Sequence record: KT919973.1
Strand: one strand, 5' to 3'
Length of the DNA: 64,000 bases
The position numbers and the translations under genes are program-made. The notes beneath the pieces were generated by a model that did not search any database, was not told the origin of the DNA, and was given only the letters and a program-made list of their open reading frames with translations. The stretch's first letter is position 1; every line of letters begins with the position of its first letter. Below are positions 618 through 57,458 of this stretch, piece by piece.

Positions 618-697
618 TGAGGCCCAAAAATTGGGCATCATCTTAGTAGTATTAGTAGTTTTAGTGAAGTTAGAGATATTAGTAATATTAGGGGATT
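618..697. repeat. Hairpin (loop AAAAATT) + TCATCT + six tandem 9-mers each starting TAG
   Basis: TAGTAGTAT TAGTAGTTT TAGTGAAGT TAGAGATAT TAGTAATAT TAGGGGATT (644-697); second copy at 56685-56761. Confidence 0.9.
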
Positions 698-56001: not shown

Positions 56002-56685
56002 AAAATCAATCTTCGCAAACTTCTAATGTGGTGGGACGAGAACGAGAAAGCAGCAGACGAGTTCACAAACTTCGTTCTTGAGTATGCAATGAAAGCAGGT
56101 AGCGATAACTTCATTTCAGATTACGCAACATACTTACGTGATTCTGGCAAGTACACTGTCCCAAATCTAGCAGACTTAGAATCTCTTCTTCGCCATGCAG
56201 GTTTGCAAGCTGAATTCGACGGTCGTCACACTCGCATCGTTCTATAAGAGGTCAACATGTTAAAGAAACTTTTCAAAAAAATATTCCCAGACCGTGAATG
56301 GAAAGTAGCAGCTTACACAGAACAGAAATCATTCGATGTGTCTAGTTCATTTACATTTAAAGGAACGATCAAGTGTCGTGCAGTTATTCTAGTAGACAAG
56401 CATGATCGCCGACAAGTTAGAGTCGTATTCGATGAGTACGATTATGGTCGAGATATCTCAGAGTACAACGAGAATTTGATTAGCAAGATTTTAAAGAACA
56501 GCAGCCTTGAATTGATTCGAAGCTCTATTAGTACTCGCAAGCTGAATAGCTATGAAGGGTTTGATTTGTGCGAACATCACGAAGCATTCTATGATTGGGA
56601 AACATTCAAAAACGACTTTATCTATGGTGAAGTTGACTTAGAAGGTAATCTAATCGAGAAGAGCGAAGCGACAGAAACCGATTAG
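55999..56685 (+). other. Hypothetical CDSs: 55999-56247, 56257-56685
   Basis: ORF track. Confidence 0.7.
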
Positions 56686-56761
56686 GCGGAAAAATTCCGT
56701 CTCATCTTAGTAGTATTAGTGGTTTTAGTGATATTAGAAGTATTAGAGGGATTAGAGTGAA
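56685..56761. repeat. Hairpin (loop AAAAATT) + TCATCT + six tandem 9-mers (second copy)
   Basis: GGCGG/CCGTC stem; TAGTAGTAT TAGTGGTTT TAGTGATAT TAGAAGTAT TAGAGGGAT TAGAGTGAA. Confidence 0.9.
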
Positions 56762-57458
56762 AAAATCAATTCTCGTGGCGGTTACAGTCGCAGTACTTGC
56801 AGGTTGTGGTGAAAGACCACAACTCGAAACGAAGAAAGATAAAAAATTCACTACGGTAAATGCAGTTGTGAATAAAAAAGAGCGTGAAATGATCAACTAC
56901 TGGCTGGCAGATGCTGACGCTAGTAACTATTTGTATAACCCATTGTGGACTGCTCTTGCCACTCGTAACAAATACGGTACTAATGCAGTGCGACGTTCAG
57001 ACGATGAAATCCCTTTCTGTGATGTGATTGCATCACTTGTCGAAGCCGAAGACGACATTCGCAGTACATACGAACGCACGATGAGTAACCAGTGGCGAAC
57101 GCAGTATGGTATTAGTTTGAGTGAGCAATGTAATTACGATGCTCCTGAATCTCTAGAAGAGAAAGCACAGCGCGTTGAAAAACTTGAAATGCAAGCTGAG
57201 TTAAATCAGCGTGAACAAAACGCATTGTCTGGTAATATCAACAATATGGATGATGTTCAAGACGCGACAATCGAGCTGTTAGACCCGCATGAGTATGACT
57301 ATCTCATTGAATCTGCACGCGACTGCAATCGAGCTAAAACAAAGTTACTTGAGCTAACACAAGCAGGTAAACCATTAACACAAGCTGACGGGTCTGAAGC
57401 GCGTAAGTTGATAATCGAATGCAAAATGCATAAACTTGAAGTTGAATTGAATAAGTGA
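56757..57458 (+). CDS. Lipoprotein, paralog of 62981-63700
   Basis: Lipobox LAGC; shared PFCDVI, SNQW..YGI.L.EQCN and DCNRAK motifs. Confidence 0.8.
   Translation: MKKSILVAVTVAVLAGCGERPQLETKKDKKFTTVNAVVNKKEREMINYWLADADASNYLYNPLWTALATRNKYGTNAVRRSDDEIPFCDVIASLVEAEDDIRSTYERTMSNQWRTQYGISLSEQCNYDAPESLEEKAQRVEKLEMQAELNQREQNALSGNINNMDDVQDATIELLDPHEYDYLIESARDCNRAKTKLLELTQAGKPLTQADGSEARKLIIECKMHKLEVELNK

Follow-up and report, generated by a model that had tools for sequence, protein, structure and literature searches.

Six syntenic copies of a hairpin and nine-base repeat element in KVP40-like vibriophages: a candidate replication-origin or replisome-loading module

Replication of phage T4 DNA starts from at least 5 spaced origins, one of which (oriF) combines the promoter of uvsY with an unwinding element 3′ of it (PMC3016281). 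At oriF and oriG, an R-loop transcript in the unwinding element primes a leading strand that runs the same way as transcription, and the displaced strand takes the helicase (PMC3016281). Also described for T4-like phages, including nt-1 and KVP40, are the promoter–stem-loop cassettes termed PeSL and PmSL, and PeSL-mediated shuffling is documented for these two phages (Comeau et al. 2014, PMC4122927). The element reported here, from Vibrio phage phi-ST2 (KT919973.1), a KVP40-like phage of the T4 family, shares traits with both types of sites.

The stretch of DNA analysed (the window) comprises bases 1–64000 of the phi-ST2 genome and contains two copies of a non-coding element of ~100 bases, i.e., a small hairpin followed by six phased 9-base repeats. 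Copy 1 (locus A) is preceded by the motif GCGAAGCG (599–606, + strand), which lies within the final codons of phiST2_0001 and has the potential to form a GCGAAGC mini-hairpin. The hairpin of the element proper (619–639, +) has a stem of 9 pairs with one mismatch and an AAA loop, the core stem being formed by pairing of bases 622–627 with 631–636. A stem-loop at this site was recognised in a preliminary description of the DNA; the loop AAAAATT given there is better read as AAA within the 9-pair stem. The linker ATCT (640–643, +; invariant (T)CATCT between hairpin and array) leads into the array (644–697, +), in which, as claimed before and directly readable from the bases, six 9-mers starting with TAG and devoid of C follow each other. 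The units (TAG + 5 + T) begin at 644, 653, 662, 671, 680 and 689 such that TTAG recurs every 9 nt, and the array contains 74 % A+T. A sigma-70-type early promoter (TTGACA-17-TACTAT; 719–747, +) is located 3′ of copy 1 and reads into phiST2_0002.

In case of copy 2 (locus B), the GCGAAGCG motif (56663–56670, +) lies within the end of phiST2_0127, the stop codon of which provides the first three bases of the hairpin (56683–56703, +). The array (56708–56761, +) again consists of six 9-mers, and its last units supply the ribosome binding site (RBS) and the GTG start codon (56757) of the lipoprotein gene phiST2_0128. The stem reads CGG/CCG where that of copy 1 reads CCC/GGG, bearing out the previous claim that the same design recurs (56683–56761) with an altered yet pairing stem. 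An 18-mer spanning the hairpin–array junction occurs exactly twice in the window, compared to 0.04 occurrences expected by chance, and none of 100 shuffles matched this count. Across both strands of the 250-kb genome, five of the six C-free runs of at least 54 bases are arrays of this element.

The gene directly 5′ of copy 1, phiST2_0001 (61–612, +), encodes a D...E-x-K type motif (CDEIEIK) and displays a weak match to a PHROG annotated as ‘DNA repair protein’; as judged from the sequence, its product may be a PD-(D/E)XK nuclease. It adjoins the element in phi-ST2, KVP40 and 6E35.1a; in nt-1 and F86, it is not a neighbour.

The preliminary description had counted two copies and suggested a search of the whole genome and of relatives. 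Recurrence was confirmed by this search, the number of copies being six per genome rather than two. In the complete phi-ST2 genome (250,485 bp), a four-unit TTAG pattern retrieved six arrays, four on the + strand (643, 56707, 134372 and 203624) and two on the − strand (108451 and 160944); the reversed control pattern retrieved none, and no partial copies of hairpin or junction were found elsewhere in this genome. BLAST detected the element in 51 phage records, all of them from Vibrio phages of the KVP40-like group and mostly at six places each. Copies were extracted from six relatives (KVP40, nt-1, 6E35.1a, 1.081.O, F86 and K566), revealing the same six syntenic intergenic loci in KVP40, nt-1, 6E35.1a, 1.081.O and K566, and five of them in F86, which lacks the copy at locus B. 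In phage 1.081.O (MG592456.1, ~207126–207337), locus C is doubled, with two whole elements in tandem ~160 bp apart.

Locus A is located 3′ of phiST2_0001 and 5′ of the early promoter, locus B between phiST2_0127 and the lipoprotein gene phiST2_0128, locus C between the genes for tail-completion protein gp3 and dNMP kinase gp1, locus D between a gp12-like fibre gene and wac, locus E directly 5′ of the gene for the UvsY homologue (identity confirmed), and locus F 5′ of the gene for an NrdH-like glutaredoxin, with gp24 and gp55 coming next. At loci A and B, the element is kept although neighbouring genes have been exchanged, the swap occurring exactly at the element edges. The record of Vibrio phage Va3 (MK568540.2; 7 places) has its boundary inside the locus A array (alignment starting at window base 672), which is probably an assembly break at the repeat. 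In the Aeromonas relative ZPAH1, synteny at uvsY differs.

In IMG/VR, the junction pattern matched only KVP40 and VH7D, and the plasmids searched yielded no match to the element. Two pattern searches (285 Vibrio genomes), BLAST (401 genomes) and a covariance model (151 genomes) returned only chance or unrelated matches among Vibrionaceae; the element was not found in the ~400 Vibrionaceae genomes searched, which is short of absence from this family. One Vibrio genome (G205, contig 18, ~684–735) contains five perfect TTAGTAGTA repeats encoding the (Leu-Val-Val)n core of a signal-peptide-like N-terminus, a coding look-alike unrelated to the element. In another one (G023, ~2084544–2084629), three TAGTTTTAG repeats between a stop codon and an intrinsic terminator give in-frame tandem TAG stops. 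Unrelated and mostly intergenic arrays with TTAG every 9 nt and C-poor spacers were among the listed matches from Alistipes, Tidjanibacter, Chitinophaga, Kiritimatiellae and others. On these bacterial MAG contigs the arrays read (Arg-x-Phe/Ile/Leu)n in one frame, and on one Tidjanibacter contig TAG stands in frame at every third codon directly after the end of an ORF. These arrays may be iterons or phage genes with recoding.

Alignment of 35 copies, which required no gaps, shows little or no variation in the hairpin core, in TCATCT, in unit 1 (TAGTRGWAT) and in the TTAG that recurs with every ninth base, and position 5 of the units is almost always a purine. The number of units varies by whole units only (5 to 7), and none of the 35 copies has an indel between hairpin and array. 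Across the alignment, 85 % of the hairpin cells are paired, with two pairs changing on both sides (CGG/CCG to CCC/GGG), in agreement with the earlier view of a selected, structured, non-coding element with compensatory stem change. Both stem variants are present within one genome, and several G-U wobbles restrict pairing to the sense strand. The RNAalifold consensus retains the small hairpin alone and leaves the array unpaired; a long RNA hairpin within the array, predicted for single copies, is not conserved and in case of copy 2 does not go beyond shuffles. The GCGAAGCG motif is found 9–16 nt 5′ of the hairpin in most copies at loci A–E and is missing from every locus F copy. Its loop varies (GAA, GCA, GTCA, GTTA, GATA) with GC...GC being retained; Hirao and colleagues reportedly described GCGAAGC as a stable hairpin in DNA rather than RNA.

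Several conventional assignments were considered and rejected. A small gene, the TTA frame of which would give a Leu/Val-rich peptide, was excluded because the copies have neither a start codon nor a frame in common: the ATGs at locus D stand in different frames in phi-ST2 versus 6E35.1a, and at locus E a stop codon precedes the TTA frame. An intrinsic terminator was dismissed, as no terminator-like site is present at 450–900 or 56400–56900. Comparison to the families of Rfam 15 gave only sub-threshold chance matches, none of them on the element. Sites fixed in nearly all genomes examined and the lack of terminal repeats speak against a mobile element (MITE or REP-like).

The copies within a genome are homogenised by gene conversion, with loci B and E of phi-ST2 being 100 % and loci A and C 99 % identical. 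Phage K566 (OZ196521.1), overall 97.4 % identical to 6E35.1a, has TTCG in place of TTAG in units 3 and 4 in five of its six copies. All five share one new 27-base variant, comprising the TTCG units plus a GATC site. The K566 variant represents very fast concerted change, and it demonstrates that neither the TAG triplet nor the lack of C is essential; the features that persist across lineages are the junction block and the 9-base register. Since ~60 ORFs differ or are missing between K566 and 6E35.1a, these are too many to pick one trans-acting factor. Homogenised paralogues, the new variant shared by five copies in a phage so closely related to 6E35.1a, gene swaps exactly at the element edges (loci A and B) and the PeSL shuffling reported for nt-1 and KVP40 (PMC4122927) could be accommodated by a recombination boundary cassette, the repeats of which persist mainly via homologous recombination (gene conversion, module exchange) as proposed for PeSLs and would have no further biochemical function of their own. 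This explanation is regarded as improbable, since the many invariant columns and the strict 9-nt register argue for selection on the sequence itself, and ectopic recombination would do damage where the copies involved are inverted or far apart.

At the six loci of phi-ST2, each copy runs in the direction of both flanking genes, and each block of co-oriented genes has at least one copy. An intrinsic terminator is located just 5′ of the element at loci C, D, E and F (C, D and F detected by scan; E by eye, the scan having placed that hairpin on the opposite strand only). The same four loci have a promoter of the GTTTAN-17/18-TATAAT type 0–27 bp 3′ of the array. At locus A, the TTGACA-17-TACTAT promoter is conserved after the array in KVP40, nt-1, 6E35.1a, 1.081.O and F86. 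A scan of locus B (56400–56900) yielded no site resembling a promoter or a terminator. Roughly a dozen GTTTA-type promoters of phi-ST2 that look intergenic have no array. Promoters of the GTTTAN-N17/18-TATAAT class stand before core genes (e.g., at 168443, 169434, 181270, 207892, 213664 and 239608 of phi-ST2) and are unlike the GTTGACA-type early promoters of the hyperplastic region.

Around the genome, the six sites are spaced by 25.9 kb (smallest gap) to 56.1 kb (largest gap), which is more even than random placement (P ~0.008 for the minimum gap, 0.005 for the maximum gap and 0.005 for the CV). This even spacing is one conserved arrangement and hence one evolutionary observation.

The presence of a sigma-70-like promoter 0–27 bp after the array at five of the six loci may indicate promoter-linked control, the array acting as a platform to which a phage or host protein binds and tunes the next promoter, or the element itself being a phage-specific promoter. 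For the latter version, one may conjecture positions 4–9 of unit 1 (TAGWAT) to form the −10 box with the TTAG repeats as 5′ leader, and the palindrome GGAAAAATTCC, centred at −30, to be recognised by an activator working together with AsiA. T4 MotA binds at −30. The genome of phi-ST2 harbours an AsiA homologue (78560–78814; E 1e-46), and neither the activation nor the DNA-binding domain of MotA was found in it. Middle-mode transcription of phi-ST2, if any, must use a partner other than MotA, and AsiA without either MotA domain renders another co-activator conceivable. Moreover, the T, A and T of TAGWAT show little or no variation, the distance between palindrome and unit 1 is constant, and the element always faces the downstream gene, mostly after a terminator, like the PeSLs of nt-1 and KVP40 (PMC4122927). 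Nevertheless, promoter-linked control appears rather doubtful: distance and phase between the array and the −35 box differ by locus, locus B is promoterless, about a dozen GTTTA-type promoters are array-free, and the putative internal promoter has no −35 match. In addition, CGG/CCG and CCC/GGG stems in one genome fit structure better than a sequence-specific dimer site, and the even spacing would become a coincidence.

Alternatively, the element may act as RNA, i.e., hairpin and unstructured U/A/G tract would form a protein landing or nuclease cutting site in 3′ UTR or read-through RNA, thereby setting how the mRNA is processed, how stable it is or how the following gene is translated. Candidate partners would be a RegA-type repressor, RNase E or a ring protein reading UUAG every 9 nt. 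Such a role would agree with the G-U wobbles and sense-only pairing of the hairpin, the unstructured array in the consensus fold and the orientation with transcription at every copy. Furthermore, the copies at loci A and B lie within transcription units, the array at locus B ends in RBS and start codon, and phi-ST2 encodes RegA. RegA proteins of the T4 family bind unstructured A+U-rich RNA, the RB69 protein selecting UAA triplets (PMC3014915). However, the position between terminator and next promoter at four loci is the least transcribed one, the next start codon is located at a variable distance (0 to ~130 nt), no Rfam family matches, and the even genome-wide spacing is left unexplained. Adding to this the reported preference of GCGAAGC for a stable hairpin in DNA rather than RNA, we consider an RNA cis-element unlikely.

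The hairpin is joined to a C-poor, unstructured tract of 54–63 bases. The six arrays are characterised by low duplex stability, with nearest-neighbour z-scores of +2.7 to +3.8 placing them among the least stable 0.02–0.5 % of 54-bp windows. Three of them rank among the 11 least stable 54-bp windows of the genome, that of copy 1 (z +3.7) being the sixth. By this nearest-neighbour measure, the arrays qualify as DNA unwinding elements of ~50 bp such as define T4 oriF and oriG. On the non-template strand, A+T amounts to 70–79 % and C to 0–2 %, as compared to ~70 % A+T and 7–14 % C in the unwinding region of T4 oriF.

Even spacing and strict orientation relative to transcription could also reflect another polar DNA site, e.g., a nick- or clamp-loading late-transcription enhancer, a polar barrier to replication forks, or a site for packaging or domain organisation. 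The strand specificity of the T4 late enhancer counts for this group of explanations. They are nonetheless judged highly improbable: no supporting feature is apparent, no link to a nuclease or terminase has been established, and the sole nuclease-like neighbour, the product of phiST2_0001, is encoded beside one copy only and is not conserved there. For the packaging site listed in the preliminary description, in particular, nothing in support was obtained.

Taken together, even spacing, the position in the gap between terminator and promoter, and easy melting point towards a role at the DNA level and on a genome-wide scale; the gap position at four loci would be odd for an RNA signal, but is usual for a DNA site. 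Strict co-orientation and sense-only pairing of the hairpin argue for a single-stranded sense strand, be it RNA or displaced DNA. An origin of the T4 oriF/oriG type unites even spacing, melting, co-orientation and sense-strand hairpin. Hence, by analogy to these origins, we tentatively favour the element as a candidate strand-specific replication-origin or replisome-loading module of KVP40-like vibriophages, cis-acting and orientation-specific, while rating the probability of this assignment below even. Support is lent by the six copies at conserved syntenic sites, kept despite the exchange of neighbouring genes, by locus E directly 5′ of the UvsY homologue, i.e., the site of T4 oriF, and by an array composition like that of the T4 oriF unwinding region.

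Of the earlier suggestions, that of an origin with iterons or of a site for loading onto single-stranded DNA fits best, and six evenly spaced, oriented and meltable copies, one of them at uvsY, add to it. The element departs from a classical iteron origin, since the 9-bp period is not in helical phase and no initiator is found among the neighbours, which differ by locus. The comparison to the iterons of T4 oriE is an analogy only, as these are 12-nt repeats at a single T4 origin with a role itself unproven (PMC3016281). The proposed relation to DnaA-trios did not hold, as no DnaA box flanks any copy and K566 has TCG for TAG in two units of five copies.

Several observations weaken the origin-module assignment. 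Within the element, no sigma-70-like promoter was recognised 5′ of the array, and at the four loci with a terminator just upstream, few transcripts may run across the array. The 9-bp period is non-helical, a protein reading the units would be needed to account for it, and the neighbouring genes do not include one for an initiator, unlike in classical iteron origins. At locus B, the array constitutes the 5′ leader and RBS of a gene, where a role in RNA or expression fits equally well. The even spacing, being one evolutionary observation, carries correspondingly less weight. U-rich RNA forms weak RNA–DNA hybrids, which also counts against an origin. To our knowledge, the T4 origins have no common motif and resisted definition for decades; the precedent is therefore only architectural.

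A more detailed and more doubtful proposal is that the six elements are the origins of KVP40-like phages, each defined by sequence and strand-specific, at which a folded RNA that is not translated, together with a displaced strand incapable of folding, would start unidirectional, transcription-co-oriented replication in each gene block. Possibly, this would combine ColE1-like primer formation with T4-like helicase loading. In the mechanism envisaged for the origin or replisome-loading module favoured above, an untranslated transcript, stemming either from a 3′ UTR or from reading through the terminator upstream, would enter the element, fold the hairpin and remain hybridised to the G-free template along the array to give an R-loop. 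The promoter that follows closely may aid melting of the array by negative supercoiling. The RNA would then prime a leading strand that grows in the direction of transcription, and the displaced sense strand, unable to fold back, could serve as landing pad for single-strand binding protein, helicase loader and helicase-primase. An oligomeric protein might also read the TTAG units, as suggested by the strict 9-base register.

Full-text literature searches retrieved no description of the element; an early mention in the KVP40 genome paper (PMC180978) is possible. Within the literature searched, it is a real, strongly conserved and undescribed cis-element. If the origin-module assignment is correct, a relative of T4 would have candidate origins all bearing one compact conserved module, and origin recognition, R-loop formation or helicase loading, and origin spacing would become directly testable. 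Even if its function turns out to be transcriptional or RNA-based, the element would represent a strongly conserved regulatory signal for which no description was found. From the sequence, the strict 9-base register implies a putative oligomeric binding factor. Phages of the KVP40-like group are widely used for biocontrol of Vibrio.

Among the known systems, DnaA-trios are 3′-GAT-5′ repeats beside DnaA boxes. The element resembles them in that its A+T-rich tract carries TAG and TAT triplets on one strand, but differs by the lack of an adjacent DnaA box, the conservation of only every third triplet and the TCG of K566. In the translational operator of T4 gene 32, a folded nucleation site precedes an A/U tract of unstructured repeats. 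A similar succession of a folded part and unstructured repeats leading towards an RBS is present at locus B, whereas the element has six copies, located mostly 5′ of promoters rather than in leaders, and its repeats are different ones.

With iteron origins (plasmids, lambda and the 12-nt repeats of T4 oriE), the element shares tandem direct repeats by easily melted DNA, and its repeats change in concert within a lineage, as in K566. Unlike in iteron origins, the units abut with a 9-bp period, the repeats themselves are the melt-prone tract, and six dispersed copies are present with no adjacent initiator gene. Like a PeSL, the element is intergenic, located after a terminator stem-loop and before a promoter, and tied to module exchange. 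In a PeSL, a sigma-70-like promoter, a Shine-Dalgarno site and a start codon come directly after the terminator stem-loop. Loci C–F show this frame with the element inserted between stem-loop and promoter, and locus B has neither of the two. The hairpin-plus-TTAG array differs from a PeSL as an additional piece between the terminator and the promoter that is far more conserved, is confined to six sites and occurs also without promoter (locus B); the text of the PeSL publication (PMC4122927) makes no mention of a TTAG array.

The closest counterparts are T4 oriF and oriG, with which the element shares a size of ~100 bp, co-orientation with transcription and a tract of ~50 bp that is A+T-rich and C-poor on the non-template strand; it is likewise one of several spaced sites, with one copy at uvsY. 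In contrast to oriF and oriG, no MotA was found in the phage and no recognisable promoter lies upstream of the tract, and in contrast to the T4 origins its copies are all of one sequence, with a hairpin and a strict 9-base register.
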